Source: Marsupella aquatica (lineage: Eukaryota > Plantae > Marchantiophyta). Taken from it: DNA of 64,000 nucleotides. This document shows, in pieces, positions 3,901 through 39,261 of the stretch. Made by a program: the position numbers and the translations under genes. The stretch is taken from NCBI GenBank assembly GCA_973895155.1, contig OZ316898.1, positions 18,115,292 through 18,179,291 of the forward strand. Direction: 5' to 3'. The notes beneath the pieces are model-generated. The model did no database searches and was not told where the DNA came from. It saw only the letters and a list, made by a program, of their open reading frames with translations. Position 1 is the first letter of the stretch. Each line of letters opens with the position of its first letter.

Positions 3901-5968
3901 TTTTGGTCTGTTTTCGAATCAGTTCCGACACTATTACAATCGCCTTTGGCATATAACACATTAAACTTGTCTGAAGTGGACCCATGTTAAATGCAGAAGC
4001 AGAACCCATTGCCACACCAGAACTAAACTGGAAGCAGCATTGTCTAGTCAGGGATTGAAGTTGAGACCTGTTGGTAACAAGCCCTGGTCACTTCCCTCCA
4101 AGGTGCTTGGATACAAGCAATGTTGGCTTTATAGAAATAACTTGATTTGCAAAGAAAAAAATGAAAGTTTGGTGTATCTTATAAATCTTCAATTACAAGC
4201 TAGAGTTGGGGCCTAGGCTTCTAGAGTGAAGCCTCTAGACCGTAACTCCATGGCTCATCATGTGGATGAGAAAACTGATGTCTATGATATATGTCATGAT
4301 AATCATGACTACTTTTTGTTATGATTTCTATTTGTATTAAAAATTGATGTCTATAGCCCCACCATATTATATGTGCATAAGTAGGATGTGGGATAGAAAA
4401 ATTGAAAGTGGGATGTGCATAGAAAAGAGTACTATGGTATGTTATGTATGATTATTAAAATGATGATATGTTTGATAAATTTTTTATCATTTCATTAACC
4501 TTCAAAACATGTGAATAAGGAATATATTTTGGTGACATTTTTATTGTCCTCCCCGCTATTCATGTTCAAAGAACGGGTAGTCGGGGCAGTATCATCTATT
4601 CTTGAATGATTTACATGGGTACTACAGTTCACAACAGTCATTCATAAGCAAACAACAGTCATTCATAAGCAAATGCAGAGAAGGCGAATGAAGAAAGATA
4701 TTGGGTGGGAGATACTATTCAATTAAAAATGGAATCTTGCCCCAATCTGGCTTTCCCTTCCGTTTGTAAGGCCTAGCTTTCAAAATGAGGCCTTACTTGA
4801 GATGGGAATGCACGAGTGGGCCCAACACACAAACATGGTTTAATGCAACTGAACACTATTTTGTAGGGCTTCGAACTTCGCATATTCTCAACTCTGCTGT
4901 AGCAAACTCTCAGCATCCATTAATTGTTGCTACTAGCATCAACAGCTTCCATACAGCAAGAATTAAAATTTCAATCATGATGTGCAAACGATGGACTTCC
5001 TTACTCTCTGAAGCGTTCTTGCATCAGCGCTTTGCTTTTGCATTGAATGGCAATGGACTAAATGTGGACTGATTGATTGTGATCATGCCCGTCTTCGATG
5101 GATTTTCAACAGGGATTATACTCTCAGACATCAGCGAAAACTTGCGACTCTATTGTTGTTGTGAGAGGATGCTCTAAGTTTTTAACGGTTAGTAAGACAT
5201 TCTTGTCGTGGTAAGAGTTCCTTTAGCCGTTAGTTATATGAATATGTACCCATGATCAAAAGCGTTCAAGATGGCGATGTGAACAGGTCCGAAACCACTC
5301 AAACTAGGTCACAAGTAGATCCCGAAGGATAGAACTTCAAGGCCATCCCAATCAAGCGGGACGAATTTAGTTTAGCGTAGGGCCCCAAACAACCAAGTCT
5401 TGGCGGAATGCTTCCAGATGATTTTATTCTCGAATAGGTGGAAAGAATTTTAGCAGTCAACACCCTATGAACAGAAGGATGAACTTATGGATTCCATCAT
5501 ATGATCTGTCATAAACTATTAGCAATGGTGCGAAATCGCTTCAAAAGTGCCAAACGGTGCCCCTACTATTTCGTTCCGGAGTGAAAGGAGATTTCCCAGG
5601 TGCACTGTACACTAGGCTTTTGAAGGAATCTGACTCTAACTAGTGAACAGAAAACGCGATGTCCATAAAATGAGGACCCCGCAACAGAACAAGGTGAAAT
5701 TGCAACGGTATGTTTAACTTCTGCAACTATGACAGGTGTTCACAGCAGTATGACTTACTGTATGGCTAACTTCGCGCAGCAACTTCAGAATCCTGGGTTT
5801 CCGACAAGTATCAGAATCAAATCGAAGACTTCGACAGCTCATATCAAGAAACAGTTCAGCAGTGTCACTATTCAATATGAATGTGCCTGAAAACTCATTG
5901 CCTACAAAATAAATTGCTTGTGGAAGAGTAACACGGTGGTGCTTCAAAAACACTCGGCTGTACAGCCC

Positions 5969-8935: not shown

Positions 8936-11079
8936 CGTGGCTGGTCAAAACTGCGAAGATGAGGAATGGAGGGAAGGAGCTGAAACTGAAACAGAGAGAG
9001 GGAGAGGGAGATGTGGGCAAGGATACCCACCAGTGCATTGCAGGCTGGAAAGAGCCGCCGGCATGGCTGCTACGAAAGCACCAGACGCCATTCTACTCCA
9101 ACTTCCTCACGTAATCAGCTCCGCTACTAGAGATTGTAAATTCCTGGGTTGGTCTGAATTCCTCCCACCACCTCTCCTCGCCCAACAACGATCTCACCCG
9201 CCCAATTCCTCAGTTCCTCTGCTGCGACACAGAGCCACACTCTCGTTAGGAGGAGGATGATGCAAGTCCTTCTGTCCGATTTGCTACTGGTGCCAAGCTT
9301 TCACTGAGCCCGATGTCCATGGCACTTGTCCTGAGCTCTTCGAGCACCAGCAAGGCAGGAATGGCATTCGTTATCCACAAAACATCAATCACGGACAAAA
9401 CTTCTGTCCAGCGTAATCTTTAAGGTTTTTACTTTTTCGCCAGAGTGGCGAATGTCGACTCTATCAAGGAGAAGATGCTCAAAAAATTCTATATCTTTCC
9501 TGGGAGGACCGTTAGATCTCCTTAGATTTAAGGATGACCATTAGATACTTGCTAATGGGGCTTGTGAGACAGAGAAAAACTAGCCATTTTTTGCCAAAAG
9601 TGGAATCTGGCAAATTTTTGCCACTAAAAAATACTCTGCTTCTGTCATCCACCAATGCAAAGCAAGGAGGTGGTTCCATGATCAGTTTGTTTCTCAATCC
9701 CTGGTAATAAGGCATTGTGAGCTAGTATGAATTTCCAAAAATTGTTATCTTGTTTTTTTGGTCATATTTTCACTCCTAGGTGTAATATGTATCATCTGAC
9801 CAAAACGAGGGTTTCATTGAGGTCCAGCATTGTTGCAAACCCTGACATCTAAATTTTCAAGAGTTTGGCTTGAGAACTATTTATTATAAAGGGAAGGTTT
9901 TGAAATTTGGCACCTTTTTATCTCTTTTGTACCTTAATCACTGGATCAATAGTTCTCCATTTCATCCCACCTTAATGACTTGGGTGAAAGGTGATAAATA
10001 CCGCCCCCTTTATGACATACCTTAGCTCCAAGGACAACTTTCACATATAATCCTCTTGCTGGAGTTCATAGTCATGGGAGTTTCAACTCTTATGGCATAC
10101 GTGAAGCTCCCATAAGAAGGTTCATATTGAGTCCTCTTGCTGATATTCTTTATTTTCCATTCTTTGAATCTACTTATTATTTATTAAATCCCTTAACTCT
10201 TACTGAGAGATAAAAGCTTACACAAGGGACTTTTGTGTGTATTTGATACAGCCATTCATAGGAAGTGGTCCCCTAACAAATGCTGTTAAGAGTTCAGTGT
10301 CTCCAGTTTGTATTTGATATGGTCTTTTGTACCACATGGTACCCTAATGAATGTCCACCCGCCCACAAAGATGAGCAAGGCTGCCCCTATAGCTCCCTTA
10401 CAAGGTATGACGTTGATCATATACTTTGGGAGTTGCAACTCTCAAAACTCTAGCAACCCTAATACTGTACATAGGTTTGGGAGTTGCAACTCGAGAAATT
10501 ATATGATGCAAGCAGACAGGAAATTATGCTAGCGTGGTGAGTATCTAGTTAGTCACAAGAGTGGTCCTTAATGCCTTTTCATTTTGCCTGACTTTTGCAT
10601 TTCTAAGACCCCATATGGATAGCCAGTTACCTAGCCAAAAGAGATATTAAAATTGGGTTTTAATACAGAACGACACAAAATTTAAGATATGTGAAACCGA
10701 GTTTTGGCTGGTCTATGTTTGTGGCTTTTTCCTCCAAGGAGAAAAACGTATGGTGTTGGGATCTTTTTTGCTGTCATGCTACAAACTAAGAATTAAAGAC
10801 AAACAAACAAGACAGTGTTAACCACTCAACATTACACGTGAAGAAGGGCATAAGGAAAGGTCATTCTTCACTTGTGGGTGTATTCGGTTGCTGGAGCTCG
10901 TAGAAGCTCTTGCTCTGGAATCTATCTACCTTGGAAGAAAACGACTGAAATTGGATTGAAGAGATGCGCATGTCGGTCCCGACATTCTTCTTAGCTCAAC
11001 TGCGAGCTCTATTCGTTTTTTGAGCACATTTCGAGGACCCTGGTATCCAACACTCTGCAGATTGTCGAGTCGTAGACAG

Positions 11080-24330: not shown

Positions 24331-27060
24331 TTACGTGTGTGCAGTGGTTGGACCAGGGCTGGTCCCCTTGTCGGGGCGAGACCTCGAGCCGCCTTGATCA
24401 GAGGTGGGCCCAGGTTTTCCCCGCTGGAGGACGAGCAGGGTGACGCGGTCCTGCAAAGCCTTGTTGTCCCGTAATGCTTCCTCCGCCTTGTTTGCGGCTT
24501 CGTCGGCTTCAGTCTGGAGCCGCGCCACCTCCAAGTTGAGCTGGTCGATGGCGTCGCGATGGACCTGGTCCTGCGCTAGCAATTTATCTCATTCGGCGGA
24601 GAGACTAGCCACCTGCTGTGCTGCCTGCAGGAATTGTTTGTTGAGGTCGGTCAGGCTGGTAACCCGAGCCGAAGATTCTGAGCGTAATTGAAGCACGGTG
24701 TCGTCCAGCTTCTTGAATTCGGCCTGCGCTCCGCTTAACTCCTGGGTTAGTCCGTCCCTCTGTTCGACAATGCGGACTAAATCCTCGCGGCGGGTCGTTG
24801 TCTCCTCCTCGAGGTGCTCTACCAGCATCTGGAGACGCCCGATCTCATTCCCCTTCGCCATAAGTTCTTCTTCCAAGCGGCTGACGATCCGTGGTTGGTG
24901 CTCTAACATGAAGAAGGCTGGCTGAAAGTACGCCGAGACTTGTTGTCCGATGTATGTTGCCAACTCCCCAGACATAGTCTGGCTAAACTTCTGGACCAGG
25001 TCGTAGGCCATGGTCCCCGGGGCTACTTGGTAGTCCTCCATCCTCTCGGGTACCGGTGGTTCCTCGGCAGGGGCAATGAGCTCCTCCGTAGTCAGCGCTG
25101 GGGAGGGGAAGGTTTCTTCAGGTGGTGGAGGGATTGGGGGTGGTTGTACTGTAGGTAGCGGAGGCTCAACGGAAGGAGGCGGTGGAATTTCCGCAGGGTG
25201 CGGTTGCGGAGTATTAGTCGGGGCTTCCGGCTCGGGGTTTGTCCGAGGGACAGTAGTCCGCGTAGTCGGGGTTGCCTCCTCTAGGGCGGGGGTGTCATTA
25301 CCCGGGGCTGAGGTGGCCATATTCTTTCCTCTGGCCTCCCGCCGTGCCTTGTACCAGGCGAGGATAATGGCGATATGACTCCCCAAGTAAGTCTTCCCTC
25401 CAATAGCCATACCACCCTGAGCCCGCTTCAGCTCCCCCGAGAATCTTCGGTAGAAGAATTGGGCCCAGTTTCGTCGTTTGTACTGTTCCACCTGCACTAT
25501 CGTGCAGAGGGAAATCTCGGATCGTGGCTCAATCATGTGTAGGGTAGTCCGTATGAAGTTAAGCCGCTCCATACAGGTTAAGTTGGTGCACGCCCCCTGC
25601 TTGTATCCGTTGTCCGTCTTACCCTCGGGTTTGAAGTGCCGCGGCGTATACTCCTTATCCCGAATTCGGATTTCCACCGGCACCGGCCCGGTTGGTAGGC
25701 CGGAAATTTGCGTTAACCGATGCTCCGTGAGTGATAAGGTCTGCCCCGAAACCTTGGTGGTTGACGCATCAGTGTCGAAATTGGAGATGAACTCACAAAT
25801 CTCCTTCGGCCCGGCGGCGCACGGCCTCCATAGTAAGTGGGCGAACCGCTCCAACTGATGCTCCTTGAGATAGTCCGCATGTTCGAGTTTCTTGATCGCG
25901 ATCCAGACTACCTCGGGGACGCGGATTACCTGTAATAAGTTGGACTTCGGGTTATCCGGGGGCCGTCGGGTCTGGTTGGTCGGGGGGTTTGCCGGGGCAG
26001 GTGCAGGCGCGGCGTCGGTCTGTGTTGATTCGGGGGCCGTCGCAGTCCTTGACCGCTTACGAGGACGTTGTTCGAGTTGCGGACTAGCTCGCTCGGAACC
26101 CGAAGAACACTCCGCGTTGATTATTGGACGGACTTGGGACTGGTTCGGCGGTACTCCGGTGGTCATCGGTTGAGGCGCTGGGGTAGCCATATCCCAATTG
26201 AAGGCGTTGGAGCTTTCCCCGAGGAACGTGAGATTACGCGCCGCTTCCCGTTGTCTGCTAATGTCTTCTTGGCGCTTTTCGGCTGCGATCTGCTGGTCTA
26301 GGTACCCCAGAATCTTGTCGAACTCCGCTTGAGTAAGCCGCTGGTTGCCCTTCAGCTTAAAGAACTTAGCTGGAACCTCAAGAATCGCCTCTGCTATCGA
26401 TCTAAGCCCTTCCTCGCTGAGATATAGTTCGGTGATGTAGTCTCGCAGCTCGTTATAGCTAGAATCCTTGGTGATGGCTGTCCTTTCGCAATTAACCAGT
26501 GCTACCTTGGTTACCAGCTTCGCGTACCTTCGTTCGTAAGCGGCTTTCTCGGGGCAAGAGTACTAGTAAGTCTCGGAGAACTTAGCACCTACCTCGCCAA
26601 ACAAGGTCCAAAATCCCAAGGCTGTGAGGGTCATACTAACCTCGTAGTCCGGTTCGTTGCGTCCACGTTCCCACCTGGCTGGTCCTTTTTCACGGAGGCC
26701 TCGCTCGTCCTAACTAAATCTCGCCACATTCCGCTCTTCTCCCTCGATAGTTTCCTCGTAAAGGTCGACTGGATTCAATCGAAAAGGCGAGCGGATGGCA
26801 GCGTCCGTGAATTCCAAAAAGGTAAACGTGAGCGAATGGCCCGCAGTGCCATCGGCTCCTCTCTTATGGAGGTGCCCGGACGAGCCCGAGCGTGAGAAGG
26901 TCAGGCCGTTTGGTCATTGATAACGAGCTGAAGTCGGCGTCTCGGTCCAAGCGTGATTCTTCTAACTGATTTTTACTCCGCTGCCGCCACCATACCTCGG
27001 TTGTGCGTAATAATCCCTTTCCTGAACTCGTAATTATTCGGTTATCTTAACCTACTCCTA
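24331..27060 (-). pseudogene. Decayed retroelement accessory ORF (~900 codons): unknown N-terminal domain, plant-transposon-protein-like domain, Pro-rich linker, coiled coil
   Basis: The 533-aa ORF (26190-24589) and the 83-aa ORF (24582-24331) are in the same frame, separated by one TGA. The same frame continues upstream past in-frame stops at 26563-26565, 26710-26712, 26914-26916 and 26962-26964. The motif EICEFISNFD..TKVSGQTLSLTEHRLTQISGLPTG resembles accessory proteins of plant LTR elements. Confidence 0.75.
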
Positions 27061-27227
27061 ATCTAATCATAATGGCAACTTGACGGCTATACGTGCTATT
27101 CTACGCTATGGCTACGGTCCTAATGACCGTATAAGTCCTAATCTACGACCTGGGTTCGGTCAAGTGACACGTTACCCGTGTCACAATAGTTAATGCTGTT
27201 CCAGGGACTAGTCTCTTTGAATAGGAG

Positions 27228-27519
27228 CCGTGTATTTTTTAAATGCAAATTTTAGCCAAATTCCACCTCCCCAAAAAACTTTTGTCACTTTTGGTTAATA
27301 TTGGCTACATTTTTTTGACACCATTAGCCACTCTTCCACCAAATCATGAACCCCATTAGCCAGAATCTGCCGGTCCTCCTTAAATCTAGGGATATCTGAC
27401 TATCATAATTTAATTCAATAAAATCTGATAGAGAATATTCCTAGAATCTACTCCCTTAGAAAAGCAAACATTAGCCACACTACTGGCTAAAAATTAAAAA
27501 AACCTTCAAAAATACACTG
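27228..27519. mobile_element. AT-rich MITE with hAT-like C(A/C)GTGTATTTTT termini
   Basis: Left CCGTGTATTTTT..ATTTTAGCCA and right TGGCTAAAAAT..AAAAATACACTG are inverted. Internal TTAGCCA subterminal repeats. No TSD seen. Confidence 0.65.
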
Positions 27520-27559
27520 GTTAATTACGTATATGTTTATGGTCTCTAGATGCTCCTTA

Positions 27560-29338
27560 ATGGAGTATTTGGACGACCGTATGCCTACCCGCGGGATTCC
27601 ATCTTCGTATTTGGACGACCGTATGCAATCCCAGTGCTGCGGTTGACCAGTGGGCTACTAATCGTCTCAATAAATATCGTGAGTTTAAGGGACTGAGCAC
27701 AACCATTGGATTCAAAGAGCTCCCTGGTAAGGATTGTGTAAAGCTTTTGATGAAATTTTTCGAGCAAGTCTGCAAGAAGAACGGTAGTCTGTATCCATCA
27801 CAGACACTGATGGGGCTCTACCGAGCATTTCACCGCATTCTCAGGAAGCAAGAGAAGAGAGTCATTGAGTCAGGTAACGAGGAGCCTATTTTTGATATGC
27901 GGTCGTCCCCTCTTTTCAAACCTGTTGCTATTGCTTGTGTATTGGCTATGGAGCGATGAAAGAAAGCTAGAGCTAATGTTCCAAGGAAGAAGGCTTCTGT
28001 GATAACATTTGCAGATGAGGCTACCATACTAGCTCATCCGAGTACATCAATCTCACACTCAAGAGGGATGCAGTGAAGGGCGGTATTCTTTTTGCTCAAT
28101 CGTTTTTGCATCTGTGGCGGCAAGGAACTGTACAGTCTGATGAAATCTGATTTTGAGTTTGGAGCTGACGTCCATGGTAGATTTGTTAAGTATGATGAGA
28201 GGCTTAGCAAAAACTACCAGGTCAGTATGGACCGATACCAAGAGGAACACTTTAGACCTGTTGTTATTAACTATGATGCTGATGTTATTGAAACATTGAG
28301 AGAGCTGATCAGTCACCTACCAGCTACTGCCACATTTCTCTTCTATCAATGTATTGACCATCCCAGAACACATGCCTGGTTCTCCACATTGAGGCTTGGT
28401 GAGCGAACTCTTGGCACTTGTCTTAAAGTGATGCATCAAGAGGCTGGCCTCGATACTAGTGGTGTCTCCAATAAGACAGGACGAACAACATGTATCTCAA
28501 GAATGGGTGTAGAGGGCGTTCCTCCGAAGGTCGGCATGAAGATCTCAGGCCATAAGAGCGAAGGCGCATACGAACGATACGACCGCAGTGCTGATGATCA
28601 AGTTCGTGTTGCACTGAGGTGTGCTACCGAGGGCACTCCTTACTTGGCTACAATGACTGAAGAGACAGAGAAGGGTAAGAAACGTCTGATTGAAGGTGGT
28701 ATGGGGAAGGAAGTCGGTCCAGATGTTCCCATCATGGAGCAACAACCAGTTACGAAGACAATGGTGATTCCAGAAGAAGGTAACTTGTTTATTGTTTGTG
28801 TTGTTTGCAAGCTCATTATTCTTGGAATATCTTTCTGACTGTTTATTTCCATTTGCAGTTGCTGAGTCCACTACACAGTCAACCTTACCTGCTGCCATGG
28901 ACTTTGTGTCGAACATTCTTGCTGAACCAAGCACTGAACAAGTCCAGGTGGTCAAGGAGCTGGCACCTGGTGAGGGTGAAGTGGTCATGGAAGATGTCAG
29001 CAATGAGAATCAAATGACCAACCCGGTGCTGGAGGCATTATTGAAACCTGATGCTCAGATGCGTTTTCAGTAGGAGACTCGTTTTACTGACTTCGATTGC
29101 TTTTTGAATACTCTCGACTGGGATGCCTTAAAGCTCTGACCCGAGGTTTAAGGGTATAGCAGCAGCGCCCAATGTGACAATCCTGAATCCAGTTAACATG
29201 ATTTTTGATAGCGTGAAAGCCATGACCAACTGCACCATGAATGGCTATACTTTCAGCCTAAATTTTGGCCCACACGGAGGAGGAGGACCTGGAGGAGGAG
29301 GACCTGGAGGGGGGCCATTTGGATCTCCATTCACCTAA
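27560..29338 (+). pseudogene. DUF3504/CryptonA-type tyrosine recombinase pseudogene with a spliceosomal intron
   Basis: One frame from ~27636 to 28779: QWATNRLNKYR..LMKFFEQVCKKNGSLYPSQTLMGLYRAFHRIL..FC-I(C)GGKEL..YDERLSKNYQ..WFSTLRLGERTL..AGLD..SNKTGRTTCISRM..GMKISGHKSEGAYERY. In-frame TGAs at 27957 and 28074. GT-AG intron 28780-28858 is in phase. The C-terminal MTNCTMNGYTF and a Gly-rich tail follow further stops and a frameshift. Confidence 0.85.
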
Positions 29339-29917
29339 GCAACCAGGATCCAGTGATTGGAATGTAATAGCCTGTGAGACACCATAGATTACGTTACATT
29401 ATGTACATTACAGAGTAGATATATTACAGATTTTAGTTTCATAGAATCATAACATACGCATATTACATAGTAGAATTGTATTCTGACTGAACCATAGCCT
29501 ACGGACATTGTCTTCTAGGCGTTCACGTACTATAGACACATACCATGCATATCATTCATTTAGACTCTCATGAGTCATTGAAATGTAATTTATGTTTACA
29601 ACTACCAATAAAGTTTCACCCCTACTGTGGGATTTCTCTTTACTTTCAAAATTTTCTGATTTCAAATTTTGCCAGCTGGATTTCATAAACCTATCGTGTA
29701 CAAATATTCTTGCAAAATACAAATACCTGCGTACAAATATGGTGAACAATTATTAAATATAAAACATGCCCATGTGGCATGAACTGGTTGGCCAGGAGCG
29801 ATAAACATTACCCCACGATCCTTAACGAGTGTGCAGCAGAGGGAAGATTACGGGAATGGAGGGTACCGACGGGAAACTGTACCCACTGGTAAGGTAAACA
29901 GTAACCCTAAAAGTTAC

Positions 29918-30900
29918 GTGGTGGACGTTCTGCTGGTGGAGCGCCACAAGCAAGGACGCTTTCTATGGGGATGCCTTCGTTTTGTTTGGGGCTCCAACAC
30001 AGGTGGATTTTGCCCTGCAGAGGAACAGGCTGAAGATTGGTCGTCGTTACATTGAAGTCTTTCCGCTCCAGGAAACATGACTGCTACCAGGCAGTGGCAG
30101 CTAACGTCGCAGAACAAAACCAGGATGACATAGGAGGACGACGGATGTGCAGCCCTCCCAGGCAAGCGACCCATCTCTGAAAAGGATCGCGTAGAGCACA
30201 CTGGGGTTTTGAAGCTCCGTGGCCTCCCCTTTTCTGCCTCCAAGCGTGACATCATCGACTTCTTCAGGGAGTATGGGGAGCTGACAGAGGACAACGCCCA
30301 CATCATGACCCTAGCGAATGGTCGAGCTTCTGGAGACGCATTTGTGGAGTTCGCCACTGCCTCGGAGGCCAAGTCAGCAATGAACAAAGGCAAGATGATT
30401 CTAGGAACTCGCTATGTTGATCTGTTCCCCTCTTCACGAGAAGACGCTACCACTCGAGCTGCCTCCAGAGCGAGATAATTCCTGATCCTGAATGGTGGAC
30501 TGCCATGTGACAGACTGACGGGTTAAGAGCTCAATAGAGAGGTAGAAGATAAGAAGACGAGAGGGAAGGAGTGGAGAGCGCGAGATAATTGTTCACGAAA
30601 TTTGGTTTGTCCCCTCCTCCAGAGACAGATAGAGAATGCGAACGGGAGTGAGGAATCAGAGAGAACGAGAAAGCGAAAGTGAAAGAGGAAGCGAAAGAGA
30701 AACAGAAAGAAGCGATACGAGCAAGGGGAGATATTTCCTAAGTCTGCTGTAGAACCCCACCTCCTCATCCCCAACGGATAGATGTGACCAACAGAAAGGA
30801 TGGAACCAGAGAGGCGGTTTTACTGCGATGTAATTTAGCCTCAACGCAGGTGGGAGAGATTTTAATTGATTCCATTATCCTCTGCGTCCACACAGACCGT
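29918..30900 (+). pseudogene. 5'-truncated duplicate of the hnRNP H/F-like gene (3' two-thirds of CDS plus 3' UTR)
   Basis: Highly similar to 31971-32951. A 1-bp insertion (GTCTTTCCG versus GTCTTCCG, ~30060) shifts the frame. Lacks the start codon and the start of qRRM1. Confidence 0.92.
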
Positions 30901-31509: not shown

Positions 31510-32528
31510 ATGATGTACTCCAGGGGGTAAGTGAATTAACCCGAGCTCACTAGACATAACTGAATGAACCATAATTTCCAAATTCTATGGACACGGGAAC
31601 GGAACAGTAACTGTATGCAAGACGAGGAGTTGTTGGTTTAGGAGTGGTGGTAGGAGATGAAATCCGTATTGACGAGGTCGGAGGGTGGTGGGCTGGAATG
31701 TCTGTTTGAAGGAATGGTTTCGACAGCGTGATAGATGATGGCTACGAGGTGGGAGTTAAGAGGCCACGATCAATGGATCGAGGGCCTGGGGGCCCCTGGG
31801 CAGCCCTTATCCCACGAGCCTCCCAGCAGCAGCTCATAGGGGGTTATGGAAGTAGCCAAAATGCCATTCTGGCCGCCCGGCAACCACGTTCTTTCCCGGT
31901 TGTAAGGTTGCGAGGGCTGCCCTTTAATTCAACTGAGGGTGATGTCTGTGAGTTCTTTGCTGGGTTGGATGTGGTGGACGTTCTGCTGGTGGAGCGCAAC
32001 AAGCAAGGACGCTTCTCTGGGGATGCCTTCGTGGTGTTTGGGGCTCCAACACAGGTGGATTTTGCCCTGCAGAGGAACAGGCTGAAGATTGGTCGTCGTT
32101 ACATTGAAGTCTTCCGCTCCAGGAAGCATGACTACTACCAGGCAGTGGCAGCCAACGTCGCAGAACAAAACCAGGATGACATAGGAGGAAGACGGATGTC
32201 CAGCCCTCCCGGCAAGCGACCCATCTCTGAGAAGGATCGCGTAGAGCACACTGGGGTTTTGAAACTCCGTGGCCTCCCCTTTTCTGCCTCCAAGCGTGAC
32301 ATCATCGACTTCTTCAGGGAGTATGGGGAGCTGACAGAGGACAACGTCCACATCATGACCCTAGCGAATGGTCGAGCTTCTGGAGAAGCATTTGTGGAGT
32401 TCGCCACTGCCTCGGAGGCCAAGTCAGCAATGAACAAAGACAAGATGATTCTAGGAACTCGCTATGTTGATCTGTTCCCCTCTTCACGAGAAGAGGCTAC
32501 CACTCGAGCTGCCTCCAGAGCGAGATAA
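31510..32528 (+). CDS. hnRNP H/F (ESRP-like) RNA-binding protein with two quasi-RRMs
   Basis: Exon 1 is 31510-31526 (MMYSRG, donor GTAAGT); exon 2 is 31727-32528. Motifs DGYEVGVKRPR, FPVVRLRGLPF..RRYIEVFRS and GVLKLRGLPF..GEAFVEF..LGTRYVDLFPSS. Confidence 0.93.
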
Positions 32529-35500
32529 TTCCTGATCCTGAATGGTGGACTGCCATGTGACAGACTGACGGGTTAAGAGCTCAATAGAAGAGGTAGAAGA
32601 TAAGAGGACGAGAGGGAAGGAGTGGAGAGCGCGAGATAATTGTTCACGAAATTTCGTTTGTCCCCTGCCCCAGAGACAGGTAGAGAAGGCGAACGGGAGT
32701 GAGGAATCAGAGAGAAAGAGAAAGCGAAAGTGAAAGAGGAAGCGAAAGAGAAACAGAAAGAAGCGATACGAGCAAGGGGAGATATTTCCTAAGTCTGCTG
32801 TAGAACCCCGCCTCCTCATCCCCAACGGATAGATGTGACCAACAGAAAGGATGGAACCAGAGAGGCGGTTTTACTGCGATGTAATTTAGCCTCAACGCAG
32901 GTGGGAGAGATTTTAATTTATTCCATTATCCTCTGCGTCCACACAGACCGTGCGAGATTCTATGGATTTGACTGTATGTGCACAAAGGAGGATCAATATG
33001 CAGCATTTGTTGTATGTAGTCTTTGGACCACAGATCCGTGCCTGGGATGGATGTACAAGACTCAAACCAGGGAGGACCAGAGAGAGTGCAGTTGAGGAAG
33101 TACGCAATGCAGCCAATGATCCGTTCATTCGGACTGCAATTCCAGAGTGAAAACATGGGTCACATTGTTAGAACACATTAGTAATGATTTGGGAAACCAA
33201 TAGCCAACCGTTATGTAGATTCCTTTCTTTGTCCGTGAAAAAGGTCCAGGGTTTGGCCTGGATGAGATGAGAAAGTAAAACAAGAACAGATTGAATCAGG
33301 GCTTCTGGTGTCGATCAATTCATTTTGATTTCTGATTGGTTTTGGGTCTTTAGTACTGCTGTCATGCTTGTGGGAACAAGTGACTCAAAGGTTCTTCATG
33401 TGTTTGTGACATCCCCACGTTAACCCTCCTTTCAAAGAACCAGAGCAATTGATGTTTCTCAGGATCAATTCGCTACCATGTTTCTTATTGACCTGGGCTC
33501 ATTGGGGAAGATATGTATTCTGACTCCCTGACCTTTGGTCCTTACCTTGCACATTGGCAACCTTATGACTCCCATCTACGCTCATTCCTGATGCTGAGAT
33601 TTGACAATAAGTTGGCAGCTTTTGAGCGTTCTCATCGGAAATGGAGTTCGTAGCTCCAGCTGTGACACCATAGGTCTACTTCGATTCACCTTTTCGTCCA
33701 GTGAGATGATGTGCACCCCACGTCAGGTAATTAGTTTCAAGTACTGGAATTTTCACCTCCTGAGCATAGGAAATTGTAGAAAACATATGCCAACCACTGC
33801 TATTACGACTGTCCTGGTTTTATGTTCTTATGACATCTAATACAAAACAAAACTCGATGAGGGCCTGAACTGCCTAGCTAGCTGAGTTGGGATGTCCTAT
33901 AATAGTTGGGTTTAGGGTTTAGTTGGGTCCTGTTACAATCTAAACCGAAGGTTCTTTAAATTCTTCAGTGGGGACATGATCTACTCATTCTCTCTTCTTT
34001 GTCACGATTGTAATTGAGACTTCTTCTAAGTCCTTCGGTGGGTAAACAAGTTGTCCACCTCATTTTTCTACAAATGCCCTCCCATCGTCAACAAAACAAC
34101 TCAAATGATTGGCAACCACCAGTAACGACATAGCACTCATTTGTAATTCGATGTAGTTTTCACATGCGTCGAGGGATTGTGAACCGGAGCTCACCTGAAG
34201 TAAGATCAAAGTCTCCACCATAAATTCAGCTCAACTTTATTATCATAAATCGTAAATATCAGCTGCAACCCCACTGGGAATAGAACAGTTGATTGCAGAT
34301 GATGGGAGGTGTTCGAGAGGCCTCCAAGGACCTTGTCTGAATTTCAAGACTGTGAACCTTGTAAAATACTGTTGTAGATTGGTTCACTTGTGCTGCAACA
34401 TGTTGACTAAGACTTTTCTATTTTTTTATGAATAGAATTTTGGCTTGCTCCTTGTTCTTTTGAATGAATGGGGAAACAGGTGGACACAGGAACCCTAGTA
34501 GCAGTTTTCAAGACACTACGGTTGCTGTACATGCAGAAATTTTAATTCCTCCGAAGAGTTTTGGAGTTATCTGAAGTTTCCTGAGAAAGACAGTTCCCTA
34601 AGAAAGACGATCTACAGATAACGGTTTGATTTTGCGATCAGCAAAATTCTACGATTAGGTGACAGCAAACTGGGGATCAAATTCTGGCCGTCATTTGGAT
34701 TTTGGCTACCATCTGATCTAGCCCTAGGATGACAATTCCTCCCTCGTTTTCTAGAAACAGGAGAGGTTCTCAATTTCCATTTCGAGTTGGTGGTATACTG
34801 AACAAACGATGGAGGTTAGAATTGGCGTTTGGGAAAAAGTTCAAAAATCTGGGTACATTTCTCTCCCAGGCTCCAAAAGGTCATCTTACTGAAACCATAT
34901 AGAAGTTGATGAAGGCCTTTTCTGACCCCCAAGAATGCTTCCATTTCTACGCTTACGATGAATTGAAATCACCATTTAATTTTCCTCAAATTAGAATATA
35001 ATCTACAGTAGTCTCTTTTATAGTCGGCGGTCTTCTCCTTGGATGACTGGCCACATTCATTGAAAACACTTCATGCAAGTAAGTGGCGAGGAGCTTCAAA
35101 AGTATCCTGTCGAGCTCAATTTTACACAATTCGTGCATTCAGAACAGCCAGAAGCTTCGAACCTCATACTTAACGTACAATCTAGATTCATGTAAGGCAC
35201 TTCATGCAATAACAGGTCAAGCAACTTCAGACCGTCATTGAACATCTCTGGTGGGAAGGGACTCAATGCGATTTCGTTAGCGAGTAGCTTCACACTCTGA
35301 TATCAGACGAATGATCGAGATTCACTGAAGAAAATTCAGGCAAAGTAACGCAAGAGTTTCAAGTAGCCTGCCTGGTGTATGACTCCACTTAGAAGCCTCA
35401 GAGGTCCGTATTGTCCCGTCTCTACACTCATGCAAAAAAGCGTTCAGGTGTCTCCTTGATTTGAGATCGCCACCGTTATGCAGTGGAGATCCCCTTATTT

Positions 35501-38500: not shown

Positions 38501-39261
38501 TGAGAACCAACTGCAAAAGGTGAAAATCACTTACAAGGCACAGAAGGCACAGTTCAATCTTATTTTTAAACATTTCTAGCCGGTGTGGCTATTGTGAGTC
38601 TCTATGAAGGAGGAGATGCTAGGAATGTTTTTTTTTCAAGGGGAAATCTGTGCAACCCCACAGCAAGGAGCACTAGGTCACAACATTTGAACCCAAGACC
38701 TTCAGTCTCCACTCAAGTGAGCTAAGCCTCTCTGGACATGCTAGGAATATTTTTAATTTATTTTTCCTGAAATATTTTGTGACAGTCAGAAATACCTAGA
38801 TTTGTGGACAACCCTTGGATTCTGGCAAAACGGGTCCATGATCTGGTAAAAAACTGGCAAATGTATGCAAAGAATCTAGCAAGTTCTTGCCAAATGGTGA
38901 ACACTTTTTGGAGAGGTACAATTTGGCAAAAATTTGAACCTATAAAATATGCTGCAGGTCCAGTCCATCCCCACTCGTGGAGAAATGACCCTGGGCCCTC
39001 ACTAAGGGAAATGTAATGAGATATACCTGTCACCAAAGCCTCCCAAGGTACCCCTTGTTATATTTTGGAGGAACATTTAAACTTATCTTGTTCGTTCTAA
39101 AAAGAAATTTCAGTCCTATATAAAATCCTCCTAGGTTATTATAATCTTTGATATTTTAGGATTTAAATACCCTTCATTTGTTATAAAAAAAAAAGGTTTA
39201 GAGGATGCATATAAGCATCTTCTTCACATGGGGCCATCCATTTCTAGGGCAACCTCCCATT

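Follow-up and report, generated by a model that had tools for sequence, protein, structure and literature searches.

The question raised by a 64,000-nt stretch of the genome of the liverwort Marsupella aquatica (contig OZ316898.1 of assembly GCA_973895155.1, positions 18,115,292 to 18,179,291 of the forward strand; hereafter the window, numbered from its first letter) is what kind of sequence left behind the broken tyrosine recombinase (YR) gene that it contains. An earlier note on this DNA had taken the gene for a decayed copy of a plant Crypton-like family, and this is supported by the predicted YR fold of an intact relative, by kinship with DUF3504-type recombinases, by the lack of a reverse transcriptase (RT), by the broken state of the copy and the presence of about three diverged copies, and by an active-site variant of the lineage. 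The best reading, which we hold to be probable, is that the region from about 27524 to 29909 is a defunct copy, with an internal deletion, of a DNA element that is present in few copies, has no RT and carries a single gene for a Cre-like YR of a land-plant clade related to DUF3504/CryptonA. The label 'Crypton' is used here on the grounds of protein kinship and the absence of an RT.

The remnant of the YR gene occupies 27627-29338 on the forward strand. The motifs KKNGSLYPSQTL, ICGGKEL, ERLSKN, SNKTGRTT and SGHKSEGAYERY all lie in catalytic order in a single reading frame (27627-28779), as had been claimed, and the tail MTNCTMNGYTFSLNFG is encoded near the 3′ end of the gene, which has its stop codon at 29336-29338. 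The interval first assigned to the gene, 27560-29338, has to be shortened: because the tblastn homology of the relatives to the window (E 1e-105 to 1e-128) begins abruptly, with matches starting exactly at 27627, its first 67 bases (27560-27626) are not coding, and the gene remnant is 27627-29338; a third stop codon, a frameshift and a 5′ deletion of about 1.6 kb had been overlooked. The first part of exon 1 (27627-28076, +) encodes the N-terminal, core-binding-type domain, which is included in the hhalign alignment with the animal relatives, opposite their QRICH1 domain, and the second part (28077-28779, +) encodes the catalytic domain and the start of a linker. Exon 2 (28859-29136, +) encodes an acidic, Ser/Thr-containing linker and the motif F-D-x..L-D-W-D, and the last coding part (29137-29338, +) encodes the conserved C-terminal tail (..NPVNMIFDSVKAMTNCTMNGYTFSLNFG) and a Gly/Pro-rich end; this tail aligns with an intact 556-aa relative (P0004), with 9813-10091 of a Calypogeia locus (L001), with the Logan contig of the nearest relative (L008) and with fern proteins. 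Database searches were made with the separate pieces of the window protein and not with a joined or repaired one, and a read-through with X at the breaks served solely to make the display alignment and to place exon 1 in the tree.

The two core stops are TGA (27957-27959 and 28074-28076) and the codon of the first catalytic Arg is TGT, for Cys (28113-28115), just as had been seen before, and the active-site positions of the window copy read C-K-K-R-H-Y. In addition, there is an in-frame TAG in exon 2 (29071-29073) and a frameshift near 29137, where L008 stays in one frame. The idea that such lesions came from C-to-T decay of CGT and CGA codons holds for part of them: the TGT at 28113 aligns with CGT in L008, the 28074 stop aligns with Arg codons (CGC, CGT, AGG) in the relatives, and a paralogous contig has C at 29071, where the window has the T of the TAG, but the 27957 stop aligns with Ser or Ile codons. 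C-to-T decay thus fits most of the lesions of the window copy, not all. Moreover, relative to L008 the copy is short of about 1.6 kb at its 5′ side, namely the N-terminal coding part (66-190 residues), the leader and half of a terminal palindrome. Since the N-terminal residues, the leader and the right palindrome arm are gone, the first Arg is replaced by Cys, and three stops and one frameshift interrupt the frame, the window copy cannot act, and its present role is only that of a fossil marking the family.

Between the catalytic domain, read in frame 0, and the conserved tail motifs, read in frame 1, the two exons have to be joined, and for this reason an intron of 79 nt, GT..AG, is predicted at 28780-28858 (+), with a pyrimidine-rich 3′ part. 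The single GT-AG intron that had been proposed is matched in L008 by a T-rich GT..AG stretch at the corresponding position: it comes right behind P-S-E-G, for which the window has P-E-E-G, and the frame changes after it. As this position is common to two copies that are saturated at silent sites, a real intron is favoured over a random frameshift. The C-terminal motifs that the predicted splice brings into frame, F-D-x-W..D-W-D and N-P-[IV]..F..K-I/M..M-x-N-C..[SI]-[IL]-N-F-G, recur in P0004, in Calypogeia L001 9813-10091 and in L008, and more loosely in fern proteins.

For the family to which the YR belongs, the profile libraries gave little on the window copy itself: with the five pieces of the window protein, the sole Pfam match was Phage_integrase on the catalytic piece, at a sub-threshold E of 0.0018, and DUF3504 was absent. 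A phmmer search of the 234-aa catalytic piece against 1.84 billion representative proteins returned 376 proteins at E<=1e-3. The best matches come from the liverwort Calypogeia fissa (E 2e-70), from Logan and JGI contigs, from the ferns Adiantum capillus-veneris and A. nelumboides, from the moss Ceratodon purpureus, and from Riccia sorocarpa, Marchantia and Selaginella. Octopus, Pecten and Branchiostoma have proteins that match more weakly (E about 1e-7) and in which DUF3504, QRICH1 and Phage_integrase are above threshold. Furthermore, a plant-only profile aligned by hhalign with a profile of the Octopus/Pecten/Branchiostoma type over 326 columns and both domains, with probability 100 and E 7.5e-49. 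The YR of the window is thus recognisably of the DUF3504 type by the direct phmmer matches and the profile-profile comparison, and the earlier assignment stands in this form, while a Pfam DUF3504 match at threshold is not obtained on the window copy. The homology is also visible in databases, as UniProt labels the Marchantia member DUF3504-containing. The plant clade spans Calypogeia, Riccia, Marchantia, Ceratodon and Adiantum, with a more distant match in a lycophyte; Calypogeia has three or more divergent copies and Adiantum six or more proteins, and intact open reading frames (ORFs) of 556-642 aa exist among the liverwort relatives.

The fold was judged on P0004, the window copy being broken. 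A homologous-protein search with P0004 returned just four proteins. Its AlphaFold (AF2) model has a predicted local distance difference test score (pLDDT) above 90 for most of residues 70-430 and low confidence over the conserved C-terminal tail. The model matches Cre, Tn1549 Int and XerH/XerA in Foldseek (E down to 2e-8), and its superposition on Cre extends over some 350 columns, with a template modelling (TM) score of about 0.7 on Cre and a Foldseek E of 2e-8. As predicted, then, the protein has the two-domain Cre/Int fold of the tyrosine recombinase superfamily, and the YR fold that the earlier note had left to be checked is found in the model. At the level of sequence, the catalytic piece matched nothing meaningful in the PDB by phmmer and the plant-only profile had no PDB match, while a mixed profile found QRICH1 (9hjt, E 4e-18, the best match among solved structures) and Xer proteins.

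All non-plant rows of the alignment read R-K-H-R-H-Y at the catalytic positions, and the plant rows read R-K-K-R-H-Y, or in a few cases R-K-R-R-H-Y, with Lys at the position of the box-II His; the set R-K-K-R-H-Y is retained in most full-length plant rows. In the maximum-likelihood tree, which was built without YRs of CryptonF/S/I, DIRS or Starship elements, the plant and non-plant active-site types are split by one branch with a Shimodaira-Hasegawa-like approximate likelihood ratio (SH-aLRT) support of 100. The suggestion that the K-T-G-R of the window might be a lineage variant is therefore right. Type IB topoisomerases have Lys at the position equivalent to the box-II His of the YRs, and for this reason the Lys variant need not be inactive; by this analogy, catalysis by the plant R-K-K-R-H-Y family is plausible. 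The nearest relative of the window copy is P0156, carried by L008, with 79-80% identity in amino acids and 73% in nucleotides. The proportion of synonymous differences (pS) between the two is 0.80, which is saturated, and that of nonsynonymous differences (pN) is 0.12, which argues that the window protein was under selection for nearly all of the time since the separation from L008 and that its breaks came late. L008 has lesions of its own: its second catalytic Arg has become Cys, it stops prematurely at 2834-2836, and C-terminal frameshifts precede the tail. The two copies decayed independently.

The left end is best understood from L008 (1-3467, a Logan contig of SRR18067352), which retains the full left part of the unit, with a palindrome at 101-227, a leader of 1.2 kb and the N-terminal coding region. 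This palindrome is near-perfect over 127 nt, and as single-stranded DNA it folds with -50.7 kcal/mol (z -11.2). Calypogeia L001 has one of 150 nt with the same layout (z -8.8), 320-470 nt upstream of the start codon. The two are similar at their outer edges (GTATATGGTTACG vs GTATATGTTTACGG) and at the apex (CGTATG.CGAC.CGCG.CAGCG.GGAGG..TACG), even though identity between the proteins is no more than about 50%. In the window, a left-end remnant (27524-27593, +, 83% identical to L008 93-163) comprises the left arm together with the left side of the apex, starting ..ACGTATATGTTTATGG, and the right arm is gone (fold z -1.3). It is followed by a deletion junction (27594-27626, +) in which 13 nt of filler precede a repeat (27607-27626) of the 20-mer GTATTTGGACGACCGTATGC that is first met, in direct orientation, at 27565-27584. 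L008 1770-2828 then matches window 27625-28680, whereas L008 164-1769 has no counterpart in the window; in L008 this deleted part of about 1.6 kb consists of the leader and of N-terminal coding sequence. The break lies at the centre of the palindrome and looks like a repaired one. Because the DNA homology between the window and L008 starts about 8 nt before the palindrome, the left end of the unit is taken as about 27524. Between 27482-27626 and 29339-29960 there are no terminal direct or inverted repeats at k=9, and the only repeat-like sharing of the 3′ region is the 9-mer TATGTTTAC at 29591, common with the left end of L008. Of two pattern scans of metagenomes for the palindrome apex, one gave 0 matches and the other two, both in GC-rich bacterial contigs and due to chance.

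The locus is covered by contigs of four runs with two organism labels. Over 27588 to about 29900, the depths of all contigs add up to about 2.5-4 times the depth of those that match exactly, and contigs differing by 5-15% map within the unit, for example at 27848-28143, 28526-29038 and 29393-29816. Read from contig depth, the host genome in each of the four runs would hold about three copies that are 85-95% identical. The 3′ non-coding part of the repeated unit is placed by the same depth at 29339-29909 (+), with a right end that is uncertain within about 29909-29917. A contig of run X3 follows the window to 29909, has 15 other bases (GGTTACGTCTGCCAC) and then goes on at 27482. This head-to-tail junction brackets the unit at about 27482/27524 to 29909/29917, and it may come from a tandem pair, from a split-direct-repeat layout or from a circle.

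There is no ORF of RT size in the unit 27524-29909, where ORFs were judged by size and not by a Pfam scan, the largest other one being an antisense ORF of 152 aa. In the 3.4 kb of L008, no RT was found between the palindrome and the gene, and an upstream ORF there has no Pfam match. The RT/integrase ORFs near the loci L001 and L004 are of the copia/gypsy type and lie 4-6 kb away. The unit accordingly does not answer to the description of a DIRS/Ngaro element, in which RT and RNase H accompany the YR.

Compared with known systems, the plant unit is closest to the CryptonA/DUF3504 elements (PMC3212892; Glomhopper, PMC13465315), with which it shares a single YR gene, often with introns, no RT, a two-domain protein homologous over about 326 columns with R, K, R, H and Y conserved, and a lack of long terminal or inverted terminal repeats seen at both ends. 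Unlike them, its hosts are land plants, its clade has K-x-x-R in box II throughout instead of H-x-x-R and a conserved C-terminal tail (F-D-W-D...N-C-x-x-N-x-x-G), and two related plant copies carry the left-edge palindrome of 127-150 nt that is half-seen in the window. Crypton ends are defined by short (4-6-bp) terminal direct repeats, and the plant unit is likened to Cryptons by its protein and its gene content. The predicted fold of P0004 matches both domains of Cre of phage P1 (TM about 0.7), with the same catalytic positions, but the plant protein has only about 15% identity to Cre, Lys in place of His289, a long N-terminal extension and the C-terminal tail. The DIRS, Ngaro and PAT elements also encode a YR, and the possible head-to-tail junction recalls their split direct repeats; unlike them, the plant unit is far smaller, about 4 kb when intact, and has no RT, RNase H or methyltransferase. 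The domesticated DUF3504 genes (ZMYM2-4, QRICH1, KCTD1, WOC) belong to the same protein superfamily, but they have lost most of the catalytic residues and are single-copy orthologs, whereas the subclade of the window keeps the residues and decays copy by copy.

The unit behaves like an element in its copy number of about three, in the independent decay of the window copy and L008, in the several divergent members of Calypogeia and Adiantum, and in the recurrence of the palindrome at the edge of the DNA homology and upstream of the Calypogeia gene. Several observations weigh against reading it as a mobile element of Crypton type. The right end is only bracketed at 29909-29917. The element has a low copy number in its host, and the family has introns and is under strong purifying selection. 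The DNA of three Calypogeia loci shows no similarity outside the coding sequence, and the palindrome is absent from the loci L003 and L004 (it is also absent from L010 and L017, the latter of which may be too short to contain it). Even on the plant relatives, Pfam DUF3504 stays below its cut-off (best E 4.4e-5). One gene model of Adiantum (P0058) joins a YR fragment to RVT_1. Moreover, the Marchantia member is a conserved host gene, so part of the clade behaves like ordinary genes.

Some of these points are just what would be expected if the window copy were a pseudogene of a host, domesticated family of recombinase-derived genes, in which the paralogs arose by ordinary duplication and this copy died later. 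The conserved intron position, the strong purifying selection and the low copy number agree with such a history, and so do the local gene duplication that adjoins the locus, the recurrence of the relative P0151 in several metagenome samples at an apparently single locus, and the Marchantia protein P0057, the product of a 7-kb multi-exon gene that is 95% identical between M. polymorpha and M. paleacea, above the 92% of a host FLA gene pair. We nevertheless regard this explanation as unlikely, because the liverwort subclade of the window retains the full catalytic set, unlike P0057 and the domesticated DUF3504 genes (PMC3212892), because two copies decayed independently, because the palindrome is conserved exactly at the edge of the DNA homology, and because the copy sits among repeats, adjoining a long terminal repeat (LTR) fragment and a miniature inverted-repeat transposable element (MITE). 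A domesticated gene should be a single-copy ortholog with a degraded active site; P0057 is of this description, while the window copy is a pseudogene among about three paralogs, in a subclade that keeps its active site, and does not answer to it. Another possibility is that the remnant is the recombinase of a DIRS/Ngaro-type retroelement that lost its RT, to which the fern model P0058 with its YR fragment followed by RVT_1 and the X3 joint from 29909 to 27482, as expected of a split-direct-repeat (A..B-A-B) element, could be attributed. This seems considerably less likely still: neither the window unit nor L008 has RT or RNase H, the deleted 1.6 kb is leader and N-terminal coding sequence in L008 and not RT, the nearest non-plant relatives are Crypton-like proteins of the DUF3504/QRICH1 type, and the fern model, with 7.4 kb for 492 aa, is probably chimeric. 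As for a chance ORF or contaminating fungal or animal DNA, the lack of anything beyond a weak Pfam match on the window copy itself could be taken in its favour, but we give it practically no credence, as it is excluded by the E-values of 1e-105 to 1e-128 to liverwort sequences, by the liverwort genes that flank the remnant and by the presence of the locus in four runs of two organism labels. The neighbouring FLA gene is 75% identical to that of Calypogeia fissa and 57-58% to that of Marchantia.

If the unit is a dead Crypton-type element, as we prefer, its intact members would move in the way proposed for Cryptons, with the unit being cut out as a circle by the recombinase and put back elsewhere through site-specific recombination; the conserved palindrome of 127-150 nt at the left edge would be the best candidate for the site of the recombinase. 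Reviews of land-plant transposons pass over YR elements; one from 2022 (PMC9033089) does not mention Cryptons anywhere and excludes DIRS elements for this group, and the Crypton papers PMC3212892 and PMC13465315 report no plant elements. In the literature searched, there is no description of Cryptons in land plants, and Crypton and Marchantia co-occur only in an unrelated context. The family is probably a branch of Crypton-type elements in land plants, one that does not figure in the literature searched. A wider reading, which we put forward tentatively as possible rather than probable, is that land plants carry their own old lineage of CryptonA-related elements (in liverworts, a moss and ferns, with the distant match in a lycophyte), set apart by the topoisomerase-IB-like Lys, the N-C tail and the terminal palindrome of 127-150 nt as a site of recombination or replication, with one member domesticated in Marchantia and some still active in liverworts, the latter because intact ORFs of 556-642 aa exist there. 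If true, a plant-wide Crypton-related clade would add a class of transposons to the land-plant inventory, supply natural plant Cre-like recombinases with an unusual Lys variant of the active site, and give plants a counterpart of the process by which animals turned Crypton recombinases into transcription regulators. The value of the window locus itself is that of one more dated, broken copy and of the comparison that exposed the terminal palindrome.

Two other members of the plant clade deserve a description. P0057 (MPTK1_5g04240 / MARPO_0141s0031, L005-L007) is a multi-exon gene product of 603 aa with zero differences between the two Marchantia species over about residues 80-298, and its catalytic positions read R-K-R-R-T-Y; it has the look of a gene domesticated from a Crypton, as the ZMYM/QRICH1 genes were in animals. 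P0151 (L010-L016, on JGI metagenome contigs) is encoded by an intron-less gene of 843 aa with R-K-K-R-H-Y. Its neighbours are constant in many samples: an ORF of 132 aa lies upstream of it, and an LTP_2 gene follows downstream in L010 and L012, and this recurrence suggests one fixed locus in one plant.

The surroundings of the unit are repetitive on the left side, where 26300-27587 occurs in thousands of copies in the host and comprises an LTR fragment and a MITE-like unit. The latter, about 250 nt long, lies directly left of the YR unit (27233-27481), occurs again at 38738-38949 (-) and 9408-9560 (-), and has a weak match (67%) in Calypogeia L001 at 4679-4844. Another contig joint, from 27223 to 29837 in runs X1 and X4, leaves out 2613 nt and has 24 foreign bases at the joint, where the matching sides measure only 30 nt each. 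On the right side there is a 983-bp copy (29918-30900, 97%) of an internal piece of the neighbouring RRM (hnRNP F/H-like) gene, with sharp edges, 2 kb upstream of its source at 31971-32951; the copy begins 9 nt past the last base that the YR unit shares with paralogous contigs. Capture of this RRM fragment by the element is not supported, as the depth fits two copies, both of which are in the window. Finally, a short motif GTAGA..TATTACAGATT is common to the 3′ untranslated parts of the intact relative (L002 1890-2000) and of the window copy (29395-29440), shortly past the stop codon, and it may be a conserved signal or a product of chance.

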